DNA of 62,986 nt, the filler included, from Reticulomyxa filosa (lineage: Eukaryota > Protista > Foraminifera): assembly GCA_000512085.1 (NCBI GenBank). It is 28 parts of 28 records of this genome, joined end to end, with 100 filler letters (N's around TTAATTAATTAA, not from the genome) between each part and the next. Parts side by side here need not be neighbours in the genome. Positions count along the whole stretch, not along the records: positions 1,322 to 7,916 come from ASPP01028694.1; 27 more parts are not named here. One strand, 5' to 3'. The first letter of the stretch is position 1, and each line of letters begins with the position of its first letter. Under the pieces are notes generated by a model, which was not told the DNA's origin, made no database searches, and saw only the letters and a list, made by a program, of their open reading frames with translations. Below, piece after piece: positions 1,322 through 18,923 of the stretch. The position numbers and the translations under genes were made by a program.

Positions 1322-1354
<33 letters not shown>

Positions 1355-1370
1355 AATATGCAAAATTAAC

Positions 1371-1608
1371 CATTTGGTATTTTTCATTGTAACAACAGGC
1401 ACTGGAAGAATAAAAGAAACGCTTGCAACCATTTCGTCTGGCTGCCTCAAGCACCTTCGATGAGACCATCGTGTTGTTGTACATCAACACAGACTCATTC
1501 GATTGAATGAACCCCATTCCGCCCATGTCTGCTGCCAAGTTGTACACATGGTCACAGTCCTTCGTTACGTTCTGACAATTCTAAGAATCCAATCGTTTGA
1601 TTATTTTG

Positions 1609-1640
<32 letters not shown>

Positions 1641-2273
1641 TTTTGTTTCGAAAACTTTGAAAACATTTCAAAAAAAAAAAAAAAGGGGTATAGGAAATGG
1701 CCAAAGCAACATGTGAACTTCACAAAATAAAAGCAATACGCTTATCATCAAAAGGGATATTATTTAGTTAATATACCAAAAAAAAAAAAGCTAAACTTTG
1801 AACAGTCGCAGATCAACCAAATGAAACTCGTTGCAAAACTCATCATTGTCCCAGAATTCGTGTGGCTTCTTATCCGCTGCAATAACGTAATATCCTTCGG
1901 ATTTTAGCCGCTTTGCCAAATGCGAACCAATAAAACCGCCTGCACCCGTTACGCACACTCGGGTTTGCCGGCGCTTTGCTATCCTCACATTTCAAATAAG
2001 TTGGTTACAAGTAGGGAAGGAAAAGGAGACAGCAAGAGAAAAAGAATCATTATGTTAATCATTTTTTTTTTTTTCTCTCATTTTTTTTTATTCCCCTTGC
2101 GATTGCTCATTTGACCACCCATTTCTCATTGATTTTTACCTGGTTCGAATTTTTCCACAAATTCTATCAATGCATCAATCTTGGCAATTAAATCTTCTGC
2201 GGACTAACACGTCAACAAAAAAAAATCAATATAACAACACAGCAAAAACAAAATGCAGGATAAAACTAACCAT
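1371..2273 (-). CDS. GME: GDP-mannose 3,5-epimerase, 5' part (exons 2273-2271, 2203-2140, ~1979-1797, 1580-1371; truncated by contig end)
   Basis: GT-AG splicing gives an in-frame M|SAEDLIAK...EP|AKRRQTRVCVTGAGGFIGSHLAKRLK...DLRLFK|NCQNVTKDCDHVYNLAADMGGMGFIQSNESVLMYNNTM...KRFFYSSSAC. The Rossmann GAGGFIG motif and NLAADMGGMGFIQSN are characteristic of GME. Confidence 0.9.
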
Positions 2274-2560: not shown

Positions 2561-5500
2561 TCAAATTTTTCCACCACGTTGTCTTACAAGTAATTTTTCT
2601 TGCTCTGTTAAACCAGTGGCATTCTTCCAAATACTATCTTTCATAGTCAAGCCAAAACTCTGTATACCTACTTTCCAAACACATTTTACTGTACTATTTT
2701 CAGTTATATCTATTATTTTACCATGTTTATTACCCCATAATCGAATTGTTTTATCTTTTGAGTATGACATCATTTTGGAGCCATCTGGTGAAAATTGTAT
2801 ATCGATAATATCTCCATTATGTCCTTCTAACAATTGAATTTGTTGTTTTGAAGATATATCCCATATTCGAATAATGTTATCTTCTAAATAAAAAACAAGT
2901 TTTGAGCCGTCTGGTGAAAATTGTGCCCCTAGTGCATAAGTTGAATATCCATCAAGTACTTGAATTTGTTTTCCAGATGATGCTTCCCATAATCTAACTG
3001 TTTTATCGAGTGAATAAGATAATATGTTAGTACCATCTGGAGAGAATCTAACTCCATTTATGCCAGAAGTGTGTCCTTCCAATAATAAAAGCTGTTGTCC
3101 AGATAAGACATCCCACACACGAAATTTGTTATCTGATGTAGTAAATATGAACTTTGATCCGTCTGGTGAAAATGTACAATCACGTACTAAACCGTCATAT
3201 TTCAGCAATTGAAGTTGTTTTCCAGATGATACATCCCATAATCGAAATGTATTGTCATCAAAATAAGATATAATTTTGGTGCCATCTGGTGAAAATTGCA
3301 CATCACCTGTATATGTTGTATGCCCTTCTAATACTTGAAGTTGTTTTCCAGAAAATACATCCCATATTCGTACTGTACTATCACTAGATGAAGATGCAAC
3401 TTTTGAATTATCTGGCGAAATTGCACTGCATTTATTCTACCTGAATGACCGTTCAATACTTGAAGTTGCTTTCCAGATGACACATCCCATATTTGAATTG
3501 CATTATTACTTGCATAAGATGCAATTTTAGTGCTATCACATGAAAATTGTATCTTAGAATAACCATTTAAATCCACTTCCAATATTTGAATTAATTTTCC
3601 TGATTGCACATCCCACAATCGAATTGTTTTATCCTTTGAGCATGCAATAACTTTGAACCCATCTAATGAAAATCGTGCTCCCATTATCACATCTAAACTT
3701 CCTTCAGTCAATTGAATCTTTCTTTCTAAAGATACCTGCCATATTCGAATTGTCCCGTCTTCTGAACAAGACAAAATTTTAGAATCCTTTGGAAAAAATT
3801 CCATTCCATGTATTTGTCCTGAATGTCCTTCTAATATTTGAAGCTGTTTTCCGGATAATACATCCCATATTCGTATTGTATTATCCAATGAAGTGGATAT
3901 AATCCTAGAATTGTCCGGTGAAAATTTTGCTGCTATTACTTCTTCCGAATGACCTTCTAATAATTGAATTTGTTTTTCAGATGCTAAATCCCATATTCGA
4001 ATTGTTTTTTCTTTTGAATATGACAAAAGTTTTGAGTGATCTGACGATAATTGAATTCCACGTATACTTTCTATATGTCCTTGAAATGTTTGAATTTGTT
4101 GACCTGATAATACATCCCATGTTCGAATAGTTTTATCTTCTGAACAGGATATAATTTTTGATCCATTAGATGTAAATAGAAATCCAGTTAAAACGTCTGA
4201 ATGTCCTTGCAATTTTTGAATTTGCTCACCAGACAATACATCCCATATTCGAATAGTACTATCTGGTAAATATGACATAACTTTAGAGCCATCTGGTGAA
4301 AACTGCAATACTCTTGTCCAATCTGAATGTAACTCAATTAAGTGGATTTGTTTTCCAGATAACACATCCCATATTCGAATTGTCTTATCCAATGCACATG
4401 ATACAATCTTGGAGCCATCTGGTGAAAATTGTGCAGTATTTACTCCTCTTGAATGTCCTTGCAGCAATTGGATTTGTTGTCCTGATATCACGTCCCATAT
4501 TCGAATAGTTTTGTCCCATGAACATGACACAATTTTGGATCCGTCATATGACAGATTTACAGTTGCTATTGATTGTGAATGTCCTTTTAATAATTGAATT
4601 TGTTTACCTGATACTGTATCCCATATTCGAATGGTTTTATCATTTGACCACGATATAATTTTTAATCCATCAGGTGAAAAGTGAATTCCATTTACTCCTC
4701 CAGTATGTCCTTCCAAATACGCATATTCTCCAAAGTATATTCCATCCATTGATGCATTTGTAAAATCGGTTTTATTCAAACAAGTTTGATAAATACGAAC
4801 ATTAGTTAAATTAGCATTAGTAAAGTTTGATCCTTCAAGAAATGCATGATCTAAAATTGCATACGGAATTTTTATATTACTCCAATCTCGATTGTGCATA
4901 TTTACATTTGCTGAATTGAGTACTGTGATTGCATTTGCTGCTGCAATATTAACATTTTTATTATTTTTTGATGATTTAATGATTCGAAATAATCTTGATT
5001 TTAAATTTATAAATAATGGATTATTGTCATGAATTCTCTCTGCAATAAATTGAATAATCCCCAATTCTTCATTTAATAATTTATGATTAATAGATAGTTG
5101 TTCAACATATATTTCAAATTGTTGTTGAAATTGTTGATTATCAATAGTAATAATATTGGGTTTCCATGAAAGAATGTCAAATATAATTTTTTGTGCAGCA
5201 TAATATTCTTGACATGATTTATGTAAAAATTGATATTTGTTATCACCAACTCTTCTCAACACATATTTTGCAATACTATCGCCATTGAAATATTTTCCCC
5301 AAACTAAAGTATTAGCAATTTCGTTGATTGTTTTTGTTTCTTTTTTTTCTTCTGCAACGTTATCACTTTTATTTTCTGTTTCCATTTCTGGATCTAATTT
5401 ACTCCAAATGTCATTATCATGTTGATATTGAAAATCAGGTTCAATTGCAACTTGATTTCCTTGATGAAACATATCGAATCCTAAATTAAGACAATATCGT

Positions 5501-7864
5501 TTTAATGTTGATTTAATTTTGTTAATATTCATTTGAATTCTTAATTCTGCCAATTTGGAAATAATGTTTTGACTATGAATATCAATCCATTGATCATTGA
5601 ATACTTCATAAACTTGTGCTTTTGAAATTCTGCTTCCTGCACCATATTGTTTCACCAACGATGGCAATACACTTAAAATAAGTTGGAGAAGAAATGGCTC
5701 TTCCACCATTTTTTGAAGATTTGGATAATTATTTAATGTCTCTTTGTATTTTTGTGATGTCCAATTATTATCATCTTTCTTTTTATTTTTTGATTTCATA
5801 TTTGCAAATTTTTCGATATAATTATGCATCTGTTGTTTTGTAAATGGCCATAAATACATTGATAATGTTTGATTTTGATTTGTACCAATTAAAGTATTTT
5901 TAATATCTTCATCACTCAATACTTTGCTTCTGCAAGTGATAATAATTTTTGTATTCCATTGATTTAAATTAAAACGATCATAAAAATATTTATAATTATT
6001 ATGAATTTGATTATATTTATCAAATATTTCATCAAAACCATCCATAATAAAAATAAATGATACTTTTTCACGAATTGCATCTATAATTTCTTTGCTAATA
6101 TGTTTACCTTGTAATGATTGTAAAATAATATCTTTTTCATTTTTTATATTATAAATTTTTGGAAAAGAAATATAAACAGGAATAGGCTGTTTTGAATCCT
6201 TTTTATAATTATTCCATAATGTTTCTTCTAAATAACGACAAAATATACTTTTTCCTGACCCTGATTTTCCTTGAATCATCATTACTTTTTTTTGTTCTTC
6301 TTTTTCTTCTTTTTTATCCAAAAATGTAATTACATTCTGATAACAATCAAATGTATCATTTTTTTCATTTTCTTCACCATCAATATGTGGATATTTATTT
6401 GCTTGTAATGGAATATATGTTTCAAGATCTTGTAAAATAGTTATATCTTCTTCCATTTCTTGATTTCTTGATTCTTGTAATAATAATGCAAAATCAGCAC
6501 AACTTGCTGGATTTTTATCTCCAATAATGTATTTTTTATAATATTCATATAAAATCACATAAATTGCTTTTCCTTTTATTTTTTCTGGAATGAATTTGCA
6601 TAATTGTTCATATACAAATTGTGACATTTTTAATATTGCATTATCATTAATTTCTAATTCACTTTTTTTATATATTTGTGGTGGTTTCAATATTCCAATG
6701 TCTAAATGTGATTTATAACGATTTGCTATTTTTTGTATTCCTTTATCATCAATCCATTCACATATAATATCATTCATTTTTGTTAATGTTTCATCACTTG
6801 CTTGCTTTAAATCTTCTTCTTCAACATTCTTTGGTTGCCATGCTCTAATATGTTCATAAAATAAATGACTTAATTTTGGATTCTCAATTATAGTATACCC
6901 TTCTAATGTTGTAAAATTTTTTAATGTTGCTTGCATTTCAATATATACATCATATTTTGGAACATATAATTTAATATTATGAAATCTGTGATGTGTTTCG
7001 ATTGTCTTTCAAAAAAATCTTTATCTTCTGATACAATTAAATTAAATTTTTCTGCTTTCTTCATTACTGCTACTGCTGTTTGCAATTTAGTTGCATTATC
7101 ACATAAAATTGTAAATCTTCCAACATCAAATACTTGATTGTAATCTCCATTATAATCACATTTAATTTTTTCCAATAATCTTACGCTATCTTTTACTTTA
7201 TGTGGTTTTACCACTGTAATCAAATATTTTTGTAATTCAGCCACTAAATTGATAATCTCATTACTTATCATTGCATTTTCACTTCGAGTGATTAAATCTT
7301 CCAAACTTGTTGCATGTTGTCTAATTTTTTTGGCTTTCACTTCATAAGATAATCCTGATTTGATTGGATAAAAGCATTGATAATGATTATCCTTCACAGG
7401 TGTCAAATTATCACTTGAACTAATAGTGTGTTCAGAATTGAAAATCATTGCTTTTACAATAGATGTAACAGTTGATTGTCCACAGTCAGGACAACGACAA
7501 GAGGTTTTATCCGATTTGAATGATACATCTCCAAAACCAATATTTACCCATACTGGTAATTTTGCTTTAGCAGCTAAACAATCCATGTTTGTGCAATAGC
7601 CTTGTAAATTAATTCCAGGTTTTGTTTCTCCAATTTCTACTTTTTCATCTTCTTTTTTTAATTGTTCTGACCTCTGTCCTACTTCAATATGATCTACTCC
7701 ACTTTTATTGTCTTTTAGCTTTTTTTAAAAATAGATATATTTTTAAATGTGTTGAAAGAAATGCAAAGAAAAAAAAGAAAAGGGATAACAATAGTCTTAA
7801 CTTGTTCAGTTTTTTTTCTCTTCAATTGGACTTTGAATAGCAGTCTGTTTATTATTTTGTCCAT
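2561..7864 (-). CDS. NLR-like STAND protein: Cys-rich Zn-binding domain + RelA/SpoT-like nucleotidyltransferase + NACHT-like NTPase + pentapeptide repeats + 16 WD40 repeats (two 1-nt frameshifts in homopolymers)
   Basis: ORFs 6921-7586, 3328-6936 and 2561-3301 join into one frame by adding one base at ~6997 (QSK-THHRFHNIK) and one at ~3419 (VQF-SPDNSK). Walker A GKSGSGKS, Walker B IFIMDGFDE, ANLTN/ASMDG pentapeptides, and 16 GH...WD-type units. The main exon starts at ~7718; a short upstream exon at ~7802-7864 is tentative. Confidence 0.85.
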
Positions 7865-8960: not shown

Positions 8961-10715
8961 TGCTTTGGATGAAATAAGAATGAATTATAATGTTATGAAA
9001 AAAATATTCTTGTTTTAAATTGTATCAAAGAAAGTAAAGAAGAATGTTTGATAATGAAAGTTTTTTTAAGCATTAATTCAGTGCATTTTGTCAATCAACT
9101 ACTACGACAAGTAGTTTTTTCTTTATTACGTTAACGTCCATTACATCTAACGAATTATGTGCATTTTTCTCATTTGATCAATTGTTTGTAGAATCAAACA
9201 AATCAGATAATTATCAACAAGCATGTTACATTTTATATTTATGGCTGGGGTATTGTATAACAATATTGAAAATAAGAAAGGAAATTACTCGATGAGTTTT
9301 GATTACAATTTGGTGCAATTGTTCTTTTTTCCCTAATGTACACAATCTATTGGCTGTGGTTTTTATCTTCTTTTTTTATATTAACAATAATCTATTCCAT
9401 ATCCAGAAGAAAAATTTACATTCATATTTGTATGGAATATCAATGAAAAAGTGATTGTGTTTACTTATTCAATCCAAGACAAAACTTGAAATGATTTTTT
9501 ATAAATGTGCACCCTTTTAAAAAACAAAAATTGCACACAAGTGACAAATATCATTTTGAGTTTTCCAAAAATTTTTGAATATTTTGTCGCAAAGCATGAT
9601 CAGGAAAAAGCTCTAAATTTCCATCTGTCATTAAAGAATCATAATTTGGAATACTTTTATATTGATTCATAATTGATGATCGATCATATGTTATTCTATT
9701 CAAAGCAATTACAGGATCCTCCATAATTAAATTTGATAATGNNNNNNNNNNNNNNNNNNNNNNNNNNNNNNNNNNNNNNNNNNNNTTAATTAATTAANNN
9801 NNNNNNNNNNNNNNNNNNNNNNNNNNNNNNNNNNNNNNNNNATCGTTCCGAAAGCTATTTTATCATTCCAACAACAATGAAAAAAGTAATAGAAAACGCG
9901 GGAATATTCTATCTGTTTAGCCACGTTAAAAAAAATTTAAGCTAACCCTCTTACTCAGTTGTTCGACTGTACTAATCAAATGTGCTTGTTGGAGTTGATT
10001 TGTCAATTCTTGAACATCAAATTTTTCTTCTGACATGGCCTTAGATTATTGATATTTTACCCTTTGAAGAACTTTTTGGCCTTGAAACTAGTTGGTACAT
10101 TCAAAAAATTTTGATGCAAAATAATATTAAAACAATGGAAGATAAATAAAAATTGTAAGCGTAAAATGTATCACAAAATTCTGAAATGAAAAACAATTAA
10201 AAATCACTGTCTCCAAAACTGATTTACAATAAATAACAAGATGATGAAAAAGCATTTATTAAATATTTGTTTTTCATGGAGAAATCGATTATCTTAATAA
10301 GTAGCACAAAAGGTGTGACGTTTGCTTTTGCGGAACATATCTTTGATACACAATAGTTTGCAAAAAAAAAGGATAACTTGACGCAAACACTGATAGACTG
10401 AAAAACAATCTAATGATTTTCAATGTTCTACACAGTGTGCAGACCTTAAACAAAAATAAAATTAGTGTATTAAGTATACAGAGGTAGAACCAAACGTAAT
10501 ACGAAAGTTGTTACTGAATAATGTTCAGGAAAGAAAGCGAAAGTATTTAAATAATAAAGAAATGATCAACACACTAAGAAAACAGAAAGGTTAAAAAAGA
10601 TTGGAGGTTGTTTGTCAAATGAAAAGGTTCCCTTATTCCAAGTGGAACTTCTCCTGCAATTAGCAGGGCAGTGTACTACATTAGTAAAACAAAAATTCCG
10701 TAAATTGAATAATTT

Positions 10716-11162
10716 TTATTTTTTTGTCCCAAATAAAGAAAGTAAGAATGGTGTCACGAATGGAGCAAATCCTGCACTCATCTTTTCAGAAGATCCAGAA
10801 AACATAAAATTATTCATTATTAGAATGCTTTTGTTGACTCGTTTAGGTGTTATGCAAATATATGCCCAGCTGTTTGGTTTACATGTCTGCTCATTATGAT
10901 TTTTTGGTCTCCATGTCTGATCATTATGATTTTTTGGCCTCCATATCTGTCCATAATGACTTTTTGGTTTCATTGTCTTTACATTAAAATAGTCTTCGAA
11001 ATATTGTTTGCATTTATTGAACGAGTTATCAATCTTTTGATAATCAATACCTGCAGCAAATTTTTCAACTAGTGACTCAAGTGAGTCAAAATTTGATATT
11101 TTTTCCATACTTTCGCTTATCTTTGAGATAAAAGCAAACAATATTTTATTTCATTTCTTAGA
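10716..11162 (-). CDS. Hypothetical protein fragment with three 10-aa tandem repeats
   Basis: 141-aa ORF near the contig edge containing KPKSHYGQIW-RPKNHNDQTW-RPKNHNEQTC. Confidence 0.35.
10881..10973. repeat. 30-bp tandem repeat, 3 imperfect copies
   Basis: Unit ~CCATGTCTGATCATTATGATTTTTTGGCCT repeated head to tail with no spacers. Confidence 0.85.
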
Positions 11163-11900
11163 NNNNNNNNNNNNNNNNNNNNNNNNNNNNNNNNNNNNNN
11201 NNNNNNTTAATTAATTAANNNNNNNNNNNNNNNNNNNNNNNNNNNNNNNNNNNNNNNNNNNNGAGCAGTTGTTCCACAACATGAAGTGCTTTTACCGCAT
11301 CGTGGGTATTCCTTTCAAAGTGAATACTGAAACGATACGATAAACATATAGTGACAAACTATTTGTTATTTTTTTTGTCAATTGTTCTACGCAACAACGA
11401 AAAAGTAACAGTCTAATTTCTGTACCCAAGATAAATTACAAATTAAAATTTTTTTCAATGCAAAAATAATTACTTGCTACATCTCTTAAAAGTTTGATGC
11501 TAAACCTCTTTTTTGGAGCGAAATGCGCCATAAACTTGCTAAATAAAGAAAAAACAGGACAAGACAAAACAAAAAGAATCTGAGCTAGTTTCACTCACAA
11601 ATGATAAAATTGTGGAAAATGTAAAGGTCAGTTGTGCTATATTGTTTTGCTTGTTCTGTTTTTTTTCTCTTCGACATAAAGAAACAATTTTTTTTTGAGA
11701 CAGCAGATTTCTAAATGTTTGAAATCCTACTTTGAAAACCTTAGTGAAAGATGGAGGCAAACCGGTACTATTGCTGAAGAAGAAGGTAGGAGGGAGGGGG
11801 GGAGGACGAAAAACAAAACAAAGCAAAAAAAAAAAAAAAGAGAGACTAGATGAATAAGAAGAGTAGATAGAATATTTAATAAAGTAAAACTGTACAAAGT

Positions 11901-12409
11901 TTAGGACTGATGCCAATGCAAAGAAAGCTTGTGAATGAGATAAGAGGGCAAATAGTTGAGCCCGTTCATGAGAAGAGCAATGAAGGACAAATAGACAAGA
12001 AAAGGTTGGTCATCAGCGATTTGCAAGCCCAAGCCTTTGGGCATGTATCCGGACATGCCATAGCAAGTGTTAATATTGACAAAAGACAGATAAAACTTTT
12101 GGTCAGTGGTCACGACCAAGTGTTTGGGATCGGCGATGTAGTCTTCGCCGACCATGTGTTTCTCTGCGTCGATCAAGCTTTTGATTACAGCGACGGGTTT
12201 CAGTTCGGGTTTCTGTTCTTCGTTCCGTCGTCTGGCCTTGTCTTGATCTGCGCTGTTGGACACATCAAACAGGTCGTGTGGAACACACTTCAAGTTCGTT
12301 GTTTGCATCGTTTCCATTTGCTTTTTCACGCCCTCGGTCAGCGGATACCACGCGTGTTTCGGCGTCAGCAATCGAGCTATCACCACGAGCGACGTTGCAA
12401 TCACCGCAC
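11901..12409 (-). CDS. Hypothetical protein, last exon
   Basis: GC-richer open frame that begins after a minus-strand TTAG acceptor (~12410) and ends at a stop; no recognisable domain. Confidence 0.45.
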
Positions 12410-12678
12410 CTAAATTCAGTTTTGTTTATTTACATTTACATTTACATTTACATTTGCACATGAACCATTTAATAGTTTAAAAANNNNNNNNNNNNNNNNN
12501 NNNNNNNNNNNNNNNNNNNNNNNNNNNTTAATTAATTAANNNNNNNNNNNNNNNNNNNNNNNNNNNNNNNNNNNNNNNNNNNNTTTTGTTTTTGCTTTAG
12601 TTTGCATCCACTTTGCCCATCTCTTCCTCCTTGTTCCCAGGAAGTTGATGGGCGCACAGAAAAAAAGAGAAAGATTAC

Positions 12679-14215
12679 TTGTTGCAAGTTCTTCAAGCAT
12701 TTCGGACATCTCAAACAATGCTTGATGATGGTTTTGATCGCGTCTTTGTTATTGCAATCGACTGTGATGTTCAAATAGTTGACAACGAAGCGAAAGGCAT
12801 CTTCGAGCGAGTCTCGTGGTCCGATCAATATGAATCGAGGACAATCACTACGTTGGGTGATTCGCTTGTTCCGAGTCACTGTATCATCCCATCTCATTAT
12901 ATAAACAAATCAATATATAAACATATATTAAATAAATATATAAATAAATATATGTAATTAATAACCAATAATTCGTCCATCTTTTTTCGCGATATCAAAC
13001 AAGCGTTGTTGTGAGACAGGATTCATTTCCTCCTGAAAGAACTCGACATCGACTTCGAGCAAAGCGAGCATATGCGTCCACAGCGCAGTAGATCCCGATC
13101 GACGATGATGCGTATGTTTTTTCCCGGCGTGCCTTCCAGCGCAGACGACTGCGCGGATTCATTCGTGTTTGAGACCGAGACGTCATTGTTGTTCCCAGTC
13201 ACGTCTTCTTCGATCGATGTTTTTGCGGTCAAGTCTGCAGGTTCGTTTAACTCCATTATGTCGTTCTCGGTGACTACTTTTCCAATCACTCTTTTATAAT
13301 GATGCACGTATACGTGTAACATTATTGCAATTTATATAATTTGATGATTGAGCAAAATTTTTTTTTTTTTTTAAAAAAAAGGGGGAGGGGGGGGGGGGGG
13401 CAAAAAAAAAAAAAAAAAATAACAACTTGGATGGGTGGTCGCAATGTGAGGGAGAGTAGTTGGAACAATACGTAGCAGGCAAGGTGTCAATGTGTCCATG
13501 TACAGTTAGCTTGTAAACGGAGGAGGAAGGAGTGGAGTTTAAGTCTCCGGCCAACACGACCGGACATGTTGCGGATGTGACGTCACGCCATTTGTCGATA
13601 ATGTGTTGGACTGACCCGCAAGAACGACGCCTGTTGCCACAGCTTGACCAAAGGGTCTTCGGGCTGCCAATGCAAATGGGTGTTGGCCACACATAAGTAT
13701 CGCTTCGATTGTCGATGTCTCAACAACACTGTCATCCCGATGTTGTGTCTTTCGAACCGAAACCGATCTGTGGGATTGGAACACTGCATTATCAAGTCGT
13801 TATACGTCACACTATAAATTGGTGATACTTGTTCGAACACTTCATTTCGCCAAGCTATCAAACATTCCTTTTTTTTTTTTTTTTTAAAATTATCATTTCA
13901 AAAAAAAAGAATGTATATGCGCGTGTGGAAATAGACACTTGCCATCTTTTTTATGGCCTGGTCGTCTCACAAATCCCATGTCATAGTGCTGTGATGCAAA
14001 GTAATGGTGAAAGTCCTTCTCGTGATCCACCTCCTGCAAACATACAATGTCGCTGCTCATCTCGTTCAGTTGGCACAACAGGCGCGGCTTTCTGTTGCTC
14101 CATTTCAAATCTTCTTTGTCACAGTATTGAAACCTCTCTACGCGTGCGTACACGCCTGCTAAGATGTTGTAGCTGCATATTGATATTTCGTTCTCGCTTG
14201 TCGCCTCTTTTGTCG
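12679..14215 (-). CDS. Angel/CCR4/nocturin-family EEP protein with a Mut7-C (PIN-fold) RNase domain; multi-exon, partial at both ends, small indels
   Basis: EEP motifs ICSYNILA, DIVCLQEVD, VANTHLHW and VLAGDLNSTP. These are followed by RIIVDRDLLRCGR-MLALLEVDV...IAKKDGRII|VTRNKRI...AFRFVVNYLNI...LRCPKCLKNL, which matches the Mut7-C pattern. Confidence 0.8.
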
Positions 14216-14317
14216 NNNNNNNNNNNNNNNNNNNNNNNNNNNNNNNNNNNNNNNNNNNNTTAATTAATTAANNNNNNNNNNNNNNNNNNNNNNNNNNNNN
14301 NNNNNNNNNNNNNNNAC

Positions 14318-15974
<1,657 letters not shown>

Positions 15975-15996
15975 GTCGCTGCCGATCCTGAAAATC

Positions 15997-16032
15997 GAAA
16001 GGGCCCTCCGGTGCGAACCGGGGGGCCTTTTC
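15997..16032 (+). terminator. Rho-independent terminator after rpoC
   Basis: GAAAGGGCCCTCCGGT-GCGA-ACCGGGGGGCCTTTTC: long GC-rich stem, GNRA loop and T tract, ~22 nt after the stop. Confidence 0.85.
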
Positions 16033-16099
16033 ACATTGTCACGCGCGGGCAGAGCCGCCATGGTTGACCGTAGGTCGCCAAGGTAGGAAGATCGGTCGG

Positions 16100-16237
16100 A
16101 TGGCAGTTCAGGCGCTGGGTCTTTGCCGCTTTTCCTACCTGGGCGAAGGCGGTTACCAGACCGCCCAGGACACTTTGGAAGACCGCCGTCGCCACCTTTA
16201 TGACGAACGCAACCTTGCCCGGCGCTTTCGATGGTTC
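16100..16237 (+). CDS. Putative rhamnosyl/glycosyl transferase (Rhodobacteraceae type), N-terminus only
   Basis: MAVQALGLCRFSYLGEGGYQ...LEDRRRHLYDERNLARRFRWF matches the GLCRFSY...GGF/YQ N-terminus I recall for this family; purine-rich AGGAAG upstream. Confidence 0.7.
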
Positions 16238-17974
16238 NNNNNNNNNNNNNNNNNNNNNNNNNNNNNNNNNNNNNNNNNNNNTTAATTAATTAANNNNNNN
16301 NNNNNNNNNNNNNNNNNNNNNNNNNNNNNNNNNNNNNAAAAAAAATTAAAAGAAATTATAATTGAAGCAAAAGATAAACAAAATTTGAGGCAAGTGTCAA
16401 TACTTGCAATCGAATATGCCACAAATTTGGCATTATTTGACTTCACTTCACCTTCCGCAACCACTACTTTCCAATGTTTGGTGGACATATGTTGTATTCT
16501 TTGAGACCTATGTTATATACGTGTATTCATCATACATGTTTTAAGTATTTTCCAATTACATTATAAAAAAATATTTTGACTTGGAATACAGGTTGCGCGG
16601 CTCACCCCTTTCAATCAATCATAAGTACATTATACAGATACAAACCTTTCATTTTTTTTTTTCCAAATTATACTTTATGCAAAGCACAATATCATGATCC
16701 ATAATCGATTCACGCTGCTGCCATTACCAACAGCAATATTAACAGCAACAGCTTGTCCACTTTCATTTGCACACCTTCAAATATCTACTCAAACATTTGA
16801 AGCAATACACAACACATACGTATAAATAAATATTAAATATACGTTACATATTAAATATGTACACATAAAAAAAACTTTTTCAATGAATGGACTCAATCAC
16901 GAATTATAGCATCAGATAGCAGGAAAGAGACAGGCGCACAAATGACCAAATACCTTGAGCTCTTGTGTTGGAATGCGCGCGTTAATTTCAATGATGATGC
17001 ATCCATCAAATATTCCATTATTTGGAACAATTGATCTGTGACCTAGGAGAAGCTATTATCATTGAAAGGTTCTTTCCCAAGCTACCATTTTTTGAGTGAC
17101 AGTCTTGTAAATGGCAGACCCTTCCACTTTTCGATTCAAGTGATTCGGTTTTTGGTAATCGAAAAATTCGTTCGTATCCACAGCGCCAATTTCTTTAAGA
17201 GATGAGAGATGATAGATGAGCTCGACTGCTGATAACGTACACAATAACGTATCAAAAACACATCTTTTTTTAAAGACCTGATCTTTATCAAAAAAATACA
17301 ATTAAAAAAAAAAAAAAGGACTCTCACATAGAATTCTCAACAGTGAAAAGAAGTAAACTTAATGAACAGAAAGATATGGTACTACAATTGCAACCAGTGA
17401 CGGATACTCTACAGCGACGGTGTTATTTTTTTTAACATACGTGCATGTTGAATCGCATATTGATTTTTGACAGCTTAATTTTTTGCAGATATGATCAAAT
17501 ACATGGGGAGACGACAGGTTCGGCATTCATTGAACGAATTCAACATCACCATCAATGATAACAACTAGTTTACCGCCATTGCTTGTTATAAGGGAAACAA
17601 TTGTCAAACGACAACAACAGCGGAGAATTATTCTTGAAATGGGCGCCTGTGTTNNNNNNNNNNNNNNNNNNNNNNNNNNNNNNNNNNNNNNNNNNNNTTA
17701 ATTAATTAANNNNNNNNNNNNNNNNNNNNNNNNNNNNNNNNNNNNNNNNNNNNTAGTGCCATTTAGGTATGGCGGTTTTTTTTGCAATTTACTGTAAAAG
17801 ATTCAAATAATGAAAAAATATATAAATGAAACATACAAATTTTTCCATTACTCAATGATACAAGGAAAGTGATTAAGTTTTATTGTCAAAATGATATTTG
17901 CTTCTTTGTTGAAAACAGCACGAAAGATAAAAAAATAAAAGTACAATTCATTTTTTTGTATTTTTTTTTTGCAA

Positions 17975-18345
17975 TTAAATTCCACCATTTATAACAAACG
18001 AATTCAATCGTTAATGAATATTCAGATGTTGTACTTTGTGTAAAATTTTCACAATACCATTATTACAACAATCATCATAATGTCATTTGCTCTTCATCAA
18101 AAAACAAAACTATTCTTTTTTGGAATTTCAAATATAATAGGCAATTGCAAGCATTCAATGAACACATGTTGGATTGGTGGAATTGAATGTTCAATAGATA
18201 CTTGTGCTCTGATCATACGATAATACAATTTGTTTTTGGGATATTTGAGCAAATAAAGATGAATTATATTTGATCAAAGATGATGAAGAAAAAGATAACG
18301 GAATATTATATCTTAAATTTATTAGATTGGAAAATAGAAGCAAGA
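17975..18345 (+). pseudogene. WD40-repeat family pseudogene fragment
   Basis: Degenerate copy of the 40713-41383 family (QIQSLxE...VxCVKFSQYH...VICSSS...TIxFWNFKYN) with stops and indels. Confidence 0.7.
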
Positions 18346-18923
18346 AAAAAAAGTAAATGATTATTGTGTTAATTAATTTTTAAAAAATATAAGAATAGCA
18401 ACTGTTTTAAACATCATATCTGTGTTTATGTATCACACATTGAGACTAATGAAGTAAAGTGAGCAAATCCATCAAACTTTCAAAGAGAATTTATCGTTGC
18501 GTTGTATTTCGCTTACGCGTGTTGTTCGGATTAACGAATATTATATTGTCCAATTTTTTAAAAAAGATGATAGACGAAAAAAGCTAACATCAAATTATAA
18601 TTTGTTTTGAACTAAAAAATAATGAAAAAGAAAAATAAACTTTTCTTTTTTTATAACAAAAAATATATAACTACATTTTAAAATGTAGTGATTGAAAAAA
18701 AGATAGTTCATTTCGTTAACAATCATTGTTTATATAGGAACATGTGCTGGATTTCATTCCAACTAGTTTTTCTACAAAAAGAAACTAAGTTAGTCTAATT
18801 TATAGTAATGTTAAGCGAACTTCTATCAAACAAAAATAAAAAATTTTGTCACGGGGTCTTCACAAAAAAAGAAACTACAAAAAATTTCGGATAATCATCT
18901 GTGCACTTTGAAAAGCAAAAACT

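Follow-up and report, generated by a model that had tools for sequence, protein, structure and literature searches.

Does a foraminiferan carry immune receptors of the NLR type whose effector is an enzyme of the alarmone synthetase kind and, if so, what might that enzyme make? The question is raised by RFI_32426, a gene of Reticulomyxa filosa on the minus strand of a window of 62,986 nucleotides (the whole stretch of DNA analysed here), which joins 28 parts of the assembly GCA_000512085.1. The piece holding the gene comes from ASPP01028694.1 and is 6595 bases long; the gene extends from past its edge to a stop at 2561, and RFI_32426 is the top protein match to the long open reading frame (ORF), with 100% identity. 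The original prediction saw here a hidden RelA/SpoT domain joined to a NACHT domain and WD40 repeats. The domain is real, but it belongs to a family of about 60 members and not to a single gene. Judged from their sequences, RFI_32426 and its relatives are a lineage-expanded family of NLR-like NACHT-WD40 STAND receptors, present in about 60 copies. We consider it probable that these receptors carry, as effector, an active pyrophosphokinase of RelA/SpoT-homologue (RSH) fold from the Tas1/Apk1 clade, with ligand-triggered oligomerisation leading to a toxic or signalling defence output.

The motif string running from KVKDSVRLLEK to SHLFYE, from which the domain had been proposed, is present at 7199-6853, and the two ORFs of 221 and 1202 amino acids were found as claimed. 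For the searches, the broken copy was used as separate pieces, the folds were modelled on intact natural paralogues and the WD40 region was read through with an X at its break. Alone, the 5' piece of RFI_32426 matches Pfam RelA_SpoT with an E-value of 0.04 and has Tas1 as top PDB match with E 0.18, while 28 of 29 intact paralogue domains match RelA_SpoT, the best with E 3e-7. A profile of the paralogues, searched against 1.84 billion proteins, gave 68 matches; the distant ones share the pattern KxxxRxxEK...DY.GD...DxxR...GYRD...ExQ...HxxY, one of them is a phage SPP1-gp7/MuF protein, which is the context of Apk2, and no fungal name appeared among the 20 distant matches looked up. A profile made only from these distant relatives recovered the Reticulomyxa profile with a probability of 99.7%, so that the chain is not circular, and its own best matches were Tas1 (E 3e-22) followed by RelP (3e-11).

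The fold was modelled with AlphaFold on an intact paralogue (P0050 or RFI_03583, residues 150-330), with a predicted local distance difference test score (pLDDT) of 89. Foldseek placed Tas1 (6OX6) first with E 1.1e-7 and otherwise returned only RSH enzymes among the best 50 rows. VIA-align also put Tas1 first (Z 12.9, root-mean-square deviation 3.0 over 163 residues), in a tie with RelQ and RelP (12.7 and 12.6, in a range of 11.7-12.7), with all top ten rows being RSH; CapRel scored 10.7 and FaRel 6.5. The RSH synthetase fold (SYNTH, nucleotidyltransferase-like) proposed by the original prediction is thus confirmed at the level of the predicted model. Tas1 being the closest match by both profile and structure, sequence comparison places the domain with the Tas1/Apk1 toxin clade and not with the (p)ppGpp synthetases. 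Three other identities were rejected. A chance motif match is contradicted by the fold, the profile chain and the conservation of residues in 67/67 domains. Other Pol-beta nucleotidyltransferases (CD-NTase, TUTase, RsfS) reach a Z of 7-9.7, under all ten top RSH rows. For a canonical (p)ppGpp synthetase (Rel, RelA, RelP or RelQ), the domain has KxxxRxxxK, DxGRFT, HHRFHN and EMQAT where RxKxxxSxxxK, DxxGxR/AVR, GYxSxH and ExQIR are expected. Hence the earlier assignment of the motifs as RxKxxxSxxxK, DxxxxR and GY has to be replaced: they are KxxxRxxxK and DxxRxT, of the Tas1/Apk1 type, and the GY is absent.

Conservation was followed over 67 domains that cover Syn1 to Syn4 without a change of frame; named R. 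filosa proteins supply about 60 of them, and the numbering is that of P0050:150-330. K32, D54, R57, T98, H99, R101, E117, Q119 and T121 are invariant (67/67), so the motif Lys, Asp, Arg, Glu and Gln pass the paralogue comparison that had been proposed as a check; R36 (64/67), K40 (66/67) and N104 (63/67) are nearly so. R57, N104, E117 and Q119 align with R330, N370, E382 and Q384 of Tas1 (chain numbering plus 21), which have been named as ATP-binding residues (PMC12691689). Median pairwise ratios of nonsynonymous to synonymous substitution rates (dN/dS) in six genes were 0.12 for the synthetase, 0.38 for NACHT and 0.50 for WD40, rough values since dS is near saturation; as read from sequence, the synthetase is under strong purifying selection and is the most constrained domain.

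Several points weigh against our interpretation, most of them on the acceptor side. The Gly of the Gly-Tyr in the G-loop is His in 67/67 domains; the Tyr that stacks on the acceptor is replaced by His in 56/67, kept in 10/67 and Asp in 1/67; the Asp of GYRD has become Phe; and the RxKDR strand reads EDKDF, with two Arg swapped for acidic or aromatic residues. In known enzymes the acceptor base stacks against this Tyr, and FaRel2 is impaired when it is changed to Phe (PMC11782079). Moreover, some Apk1-like exported synthetases make (p)ppGpp (PMC12691689), and membership of the clade therefore leaves the product unfixed. The product is also uncertain because the acceptor loop is remodelled, with THHRFHN in place of GYRD or GYS. 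The signature published for Apk and (p)ppApp synthetases consists of R-aromatic-T in Syn2, GxN in Syn3 and YH in Syn4 (PMC12226406): the Reticulomyxa domains have RFT in Syn2, the Asn of Syn3 with Phe in place of Gly, and AT in Syn4, where Tas1 has VN. They may belong among the (p)ppApp synthetases.

The loss of GY and Asp from the G-loop, fixed throughout the clade, could also indicate a pseudo-enzyme or nucleotide sensor, which would bind ATP or bacterial (p)ppGpp or (p)ppApp and act as a decoy or as a regulator of NACHT, the output passing through the N-terminal helical and Cys-rich domains. These extra domains are conserved, and an amoeba that eats bacteria would presumably encounter alarmones. 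We find this rather hard to accept, since the Asp and Glu that bind Mg, like the Lys, Arg and Gln of the donor site, show 100% conservation in the most constrained domain of the protein and the position N-terminal to NACHT is that of an effector; moreover, His is able to stack on a purine, and the Y175A mutant of FaRel remains toxic (PMC7229694). An intact donor site beside an altered but conserved acceptor site reads best, as far as sequence goes, as an enzyme that is active on an acceptor which sequence does not reveal.

One sub-case of an active effector would be a pyrophosphokinase whose substrate is a macromolecule. The 3'-CCA end of tRNA, the target of FaRel2 and CapRel, is the most plausible candidate, so that translation would be shut down and no alarmone made; the Cys-rich domain would then aid RNA binding. 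The change of the basic RxKDR strand to SEDKDF fits this idea, tRNA-targeting toxSAS being marked by a positive patch of reduced size at their acceptor site (PMC11782079), and CapRel is a phage-sensing immune enzyme of the same fold (Z 10.7). However, Tas1 is closer than CapRel or FaRel in both sequence and structure, and RelQ, whose equivalent strand (DQRDY) also contains an acidic residue, makes alarmones; we regard the tRNA end as an unlikely target. If the domain is active, the chances are about even that the acceptor is an adenine nucleotide, giving (p)ppApp together with a drain of ATP. Another acceptor, for example an RNA 3' end or another nucleotide, is conceivable though we would not expect it, and a guanine nucleotide, giving (p)ppGpp, is distinctly improbable.

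The architecture predicted for the locus, effector-NACHT-WD40, holds: NACHT is recognised by Pfam, the 16 WD40 repeats are confirmed, and dozens of paralogues carry the synthetase fused to NACHT-WD40. The tripartite arrangement of effector, NTPase and repeat sensor on one polypeptide is intact in the paralogue L009, a single uninterrupted ORF of 1851 codons, and is broken by frameshifts in RFI_32426. All 118 matches (118/118) of two word-indexed protein searches were R. filosa proteins. About 60 paralogue synthetase domains are in frame in this organism and 71 of its long proteins match the stretch from synthetase to NACHT; a Walker A follows within 330 residues downstream in 53 of the 57 synthetase domains with enough sequence. 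Among 70 long paralogues, Walker A is kept in 66, Walker B in 63, sensor-1 in 59 and the winged-helix FLHKS in 54. Variation in the sensor (374 repeats) peaks at positions 7, 9 and 25 of the 42-residue WD40 unit, with 3.4-4.0 bits, whereas most core positions stay below 2 bits. These three positions, the residues that follow GH and precede the conserved Asp, are presumably those of the ligand-binding top face. A variable face on a constant effector is, at the level of sequence, the pattern of diversified non-self sensors. Against this stands that the ratio of nonsynonymous to synonymous differences (pN/pS) of the top face is about 1.3, a saturated value that falls short of a formal test for positive selection.

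N-terminal to the synthetase lies a Cys-rich domain, probably Zn-binding, with look-alikes among eukaryotic (rotifer) proteins; ubiquitin-fused proteins also occur among its look-alikes in the Atlas. The true N-terminal exon of RFI_32426 lies outside the piece; in paralogues it encodes an xGG-MQ motif and a small helical domain. Forty paralogue N-termini carry the motif as xxGG-MQ (e.g., L008:3640-3820), ahead of the small helical and the Cys-rich domains. From its sequence, xxGG-MQ looks like a ubiquitin C-terminal cleavage site, and the helical domain is UBA/CUE-like by eye with no Pfam match. No model of PADLOC or NCBIfam fits the R. filosa protein.

Variants of the architecture were also observed. 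P0048 (RFI_08856) and P0119 (RFI_07141) have tandem Zn-synthetase-linker modules ahead of a single NACHT, and the first synthetase copy of P0048 has a degenerate G-loop, HDRFHS. P0118 (L013:4946-7999, labelled 'vcbs repeat-containing protein') is an intact single ORF with Zn and synthetase domains and no NACHT, in the order signal-peptide-like start, extracellular repeats, transmembrane segment, coiled coil and cytoplasmic Zn-synthetase; the GC content of L013 is 46% in P0118 and 30% upstream. Such a sequence could possibly encode a transmembrane-receptor alarmone synthetase. A family member on L012 has as neighbours, at 9604-18417, a fragment of WD40 and a further STAND gene with NACHT and HEAT repeats (1905 amino acids), an arrangement of sequences that hints at NLR clusters.

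Table 1. Features of RFI_32426, in window positions and in the order of transcription
Feature	Position	Strand	Remark
Small coding exon (linker peptide)	7802-7844	minus	43 nt vs 42 nt in paralogue L008
Break no. 3, one extra base, A-run of small 5' exon	~7812-7819 (~7815)	minus	
GT-AG intron, 83 nt	7719-7801	minus	same splice in NCBI model P0049
Cys-rich all-beta domain (GINLQGYCxNxxC ... CPxC)	7290-7640	minus	no Pfam family
ORF, 221 aa	6921-7586	minus	
RSH synthetase domain, Tas1/Apk1-like clade	6760-7289	minus	
Syn1, KVKDSVRLLEK	7199-7167	minus	
Syn2, DVGRFT	7127-7110	minus	
SEDKDFF	7031-7011	minus	
Break no. 1, single-base frameshift, A-run directly before G-loop	6994-6998	minus	
G-loop, THHRFHN	6996-6976	minus	
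Syn4, EMQAT	6939-6925	minus	EMQ at 6939-6931
ORF, 1202 aa	3328-6936	minus	
Syn5, SHLFYE	6870-6853	minus	
Helical linker domain	6300-6759	minus	ends in YIPLQA pre-NACHT motif
NACHT NTPase core	5806-6285	minus	Pfam NACHT above cut-off, E 2e-8
Walker A, GKSGSGKS	6273-6247	minus	
Walker B, FIMDGFDE	6051-6028	minus	
Sensor-1, ITCR	5940-5929	minus	
NACHT-associated helical and winged-helix region	4860-5805	minus	EEPFLL 5703, FLHKSCQEY 5229
Pentapeptide repeats	4756-4854	minus	Pfam PF00805, E 7e-7
16 WD40 repeats (sensor)	2720-4719	minus	top-face positions hypervariable
Break no. 2, single-base frameshift, T-run in WD40 repeat 11	3416-3420 (~3418)	minus	
ORF, 246 aa	2561-3301	minus	
Conserved C-terminal tail and stop codon	2561-2719	minus	

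The reading frame of RFI_32426 (Table 1) requires an explanation of its own. One missing A at about 6997 had been proposed, and indeed this A-run is one base short compared with 5/5 paralogue loci whose DNA stays in frame there; the gene has, however, three frameshifts over about 5.3 kb and not one, each of a single base and each in a homopolymer run. They might mark RFI_32426 itself as a genuine recent pseudogene within a functional family, given their number over this distance and the fact that birth-and-death evolution is usual for NLR families. Yet no nonsense substitution, or in-frame stop arising by substitution, was found in RFI_32426; its synthetase has a dN/dS of 0.06-0.09 against its two nearest paralogues; and two of the five paralogue loci compared (L008 and L012) each have one single-base break of the same type in the WD40 region. 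For these reasons a pseudogene is unlikely, and the three breaks are very probably homopolymer errors of sequencing or assembly, of the pyrosequencing type; we take the R. filosa assembly to have been built from 454 reads. The NCBI model spans the break at about 6997 with a false intron and so loses the HRFHN and EMQAT motifs. The frameshift, which the original prediction held responsible, does not explain why the domain had been missed, since intact paralogues also fall under the Pfam gathering score (22.6 bits against 27 for the displayed intact member of the family); neither is the protein labelled a 'WD40 protein' as had been expected, but hypothetical by NCBI and NACHT-domain by UniRef.

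The GT-AG intron (7801-7719) and the low GC content of RFI_32426 fit a nuclear gene and not a bacterial contaminant. Bacterial contamination was rejected on these grounds, together with the AT-richness of the DNA, its place in the NCBI R. filosa assembly and an intron-containing neighbour. This downstream neighbour (1322-1988, minus strand), cut by the edge of the piece, encodes an NAD-dependent epimerase/dehydratase; it looks like a GDP-mannose 3',5'-epimerase, an ordinary neighbour. Rfam gave no match anywhere in the piece.

How much of this design is new? RelA_SpoT-NACHT-WD40 proteins are already known from fungi, as the original prediction noted: they were described in 2014 as a rare class whose function was unassayed, with RelA_SpoT making up less than 1% of annotated fungal NLR N-termini (Dyrka et al., PMC4986451). 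In Sordariales, 17 of 4613 NLRs carry RelA_SpoT (PMC12258605), and such NLRs are still termed poorly documented (PMC10197012). Alarmone synthetases also figure among the predicted effector domains of bNACHT proteins, none of them assayed, in the preprint of Kibby et al. (bioRxiv 2022.07.19.500537), where Reticulomyxa and Rhizaria are not mentioned. It is on account of these fungal reports and bNACHT predictions that we count the design as known. The fungal proteins have the same order of RSH synthetase effector, NACHT and WD40, but they are rare where Reticulomyxa has about 60 copies in one genome, and the Reticulomyxa domain is Tas1-like, falls under the Pfam cut-off and is accompanied by extra Cys-rich, helical and pentapeptide parts. 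In the literature searched, which did not cover the genome paper, no article pairs Reticulomyxa with NACHT or ppGpp, in agreement with the earlier statement that the architecture was undescribed in Rhizaria and foraminifera. As far as the literature shows, the novelty lies in the occurrence in Rhizaria, the growth of the family to about 60 copies, an enzyme of the Tas1 type whose acceptor pocket is new and fixed, and the matching modules on bacterial-looking contigs.

The best match remains the group formed by Tas1/Apk1, a (p)ppApp synthetase of Pseudomonas aeruginosa PA14 (6OX6), and by Apk2 and the exported alarmone synthetases (EAS), with which the domain has in common KxxxRxxxK, DY.GD, DxxRxT, the G-loop Asn, ExQ and HxxYE. 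Identity is 17-19%, the G-loop differs (T-H-[H/Y]-R-F-H-N against L-G-Y-S-G-V-N in Tas1), and Tas1 is a toxin that one bacterium injects into another and that has its own immunity protein, whereas the Reticulomyxa domain is placed in cis in a cytosolic eukaryotic receptor. The tRNA pyrophosphokinases CapRel and FaRel2, of the toxSAS group, have the RSH fold as well, and CapRel is switched on by sensing an invader; but these are controlled by a pseudo-zinc-finger antitoxin, where Reticulomyxa has a STAND NTPase, and their structural scores are lower. The logic of effector, NACHT and sensor is that of the bNACHT and Avs STAND receptors. The Podospora HNWD proteins (het-d/het-e) are likewise NACHT-WD40 proteins of a syncytial organism, with conserved repeats and a hypervariable top face; their effector is however HET (TIR-like), and the WD40 repeats of Reticulomyxa are less homogenised. 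No incompatibility genetics for Reticulomyxa was found in the literature searched. By analogy, the Reticulomyxa receptor may work like an NLR with a toxSAS effector.

Relatives outside R. filosa shed light on where the module may come from. Synthetases of the THHRFHN type occur on AT-rich metagenome contigs resembling other foraminifera (L005, L006) and also on L002 (48% GC), L003 and L004. At L006:4600-4700, foraminifera-like DNA of about 30% GC passes into bacterial DNA of 59% GC within the synthetase gene, so that the contig is suspected to be a chimera of the assembly. L003 (786-2505) and L004 carry a gene with a signal-peptide-like start, the order Zn-synthetase-linker-NACHT and two in-frame TAG codons, directly after a divergent bacterial-type recA (61% to its nearest match); it may be an endosymbiont pseudogene, or TAG may be recoded. 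On L001 (2745-6532), beside Rpn and IS1634 transposases, another gene, frameshifted near its 3' end, encodes a signal peptide, ankyrins, a synthetase of the THYRD type, NACHT, pentapeptide repeats and WD40, and its NACHT region falls into one sub-family with that of Reticulomyxa (30% over 544 columns, E 4e-71). In a maximum-likelihood tree, with midpoint root only and without a Tas1 row, an outgroup root or a one-clade test, the THHRFHN clade had a support of 100/99, with the L003 protein as first branch within it (80/73) and the L001-type proteins as its sister (97/92). One sequence of this tree, P0138, derives from an environmental record and not from R. filosa. These placements and the shared NACHT sub-family indicate that synthetase and NACHT were inherited together. 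The contigs carrying the same module look bacterial from their sequence, with endosymbiont-like traits, and a transfer of the module, perhaps from endosymbiont-like bacteria, is plausible on these comparisons. It would agree with Kibby et al. (bioRxiv 2022.07.19.500537), who propose repeated transfer from intracellular bacteria to eukaryotes. Searches by pattern through GTDB genomes, JGI metagenomes and viral contigs revealed no relatives, with limited sensitivity, the JGI scan having missed known loci; tblastn against phages and plasmids, also of limited sensitivity, found none either. Tas1-like synthetase domains were also seen in other long proteins (P0153, P0156, P0157, P0159 and P0168), some with TPR or DUF285 repeats; P0157 is from the eukaryote Guillardia theta. 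Judging by such sequences, the Tas1-like RSH clade may have a wider distribution among protists.

From the biology of STAND and NLR proteins, we would expect the WD40 propellers to bind a non-self ligand, upon which NACHT would swap its nucleotide and oligomerise, and the oligomer would release or cluster the N-terminal synthetase. As with Tas1 and Apk1, the enzyme would then move pyrophosphate from ATP onto a 3'-OH acceptor with release of AMP, a high rate draining ATP and ADP until death and a low rate giving a signal. The trigger would be the meeting with a parasite, a symbiont or non-self cytoplasm, and the output either a diffusible signal or a local response, in which metabolism shuts down or a portion of the syncytial network dies. 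In a multinucleate, pseudopod-fusing network that eats bacteria, a sector could be sacrificed or sealed, as in fungal heterokaryon incompatibility, and by this analogy such is the likely use of the receptor family. An active enzyme might instead serve to manipulate symbionts or prey, or in housekeeping stress signalling, with the alarmone directed against endosymbionts or against bacteria inside food vacuoles, an idea raised for fungi by Dyrka et al. (PMC4986451). It is bacteria that naturally respond to alarmones (PMC4986451), and both the transmembrane variant without NACHT (P0118) and the relatives with signal peptides on bacterial-looking contigs would suit it. But the NLR-type members have no signal peptide, so that their product would be cytosolic, and a large set of copies whose sensor faces vary is what non-self recognition typically shows; we judge such a use improbable.

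Taken as a defence effector, the synthetase would have become the usual output of several dozen NLR-like receptors in one protist. To our knowledge, eukaryotes do not make alarmones on purpose outside plastids. The THHRFHN/SEDKDF pocket might even define a new RSH sub-family with a new acceptor, making an undescribed pyrophosphorylated nucleotide or RNA modification as the chief output of a repertoire of about 60 receptors, with the entire synthetase-NACHT-WD40 module exchanged with intracellular bacteria; we find this doubtful, but if true it would mean a eukaryotic cytosolic immune pathway based on alarmone chemistry. Natural paralogues provide a compact intact enzyme of 180-300 amino acids, with which it becomes possible to ask whether NLRs signal or kill via pyrophosphorylated nucleotides. 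The family also offers a first way into the study of how foraminifera recognise non-self, and points to a possible recent exchange of NLRs between intracellular bacteria and a eukaryote.

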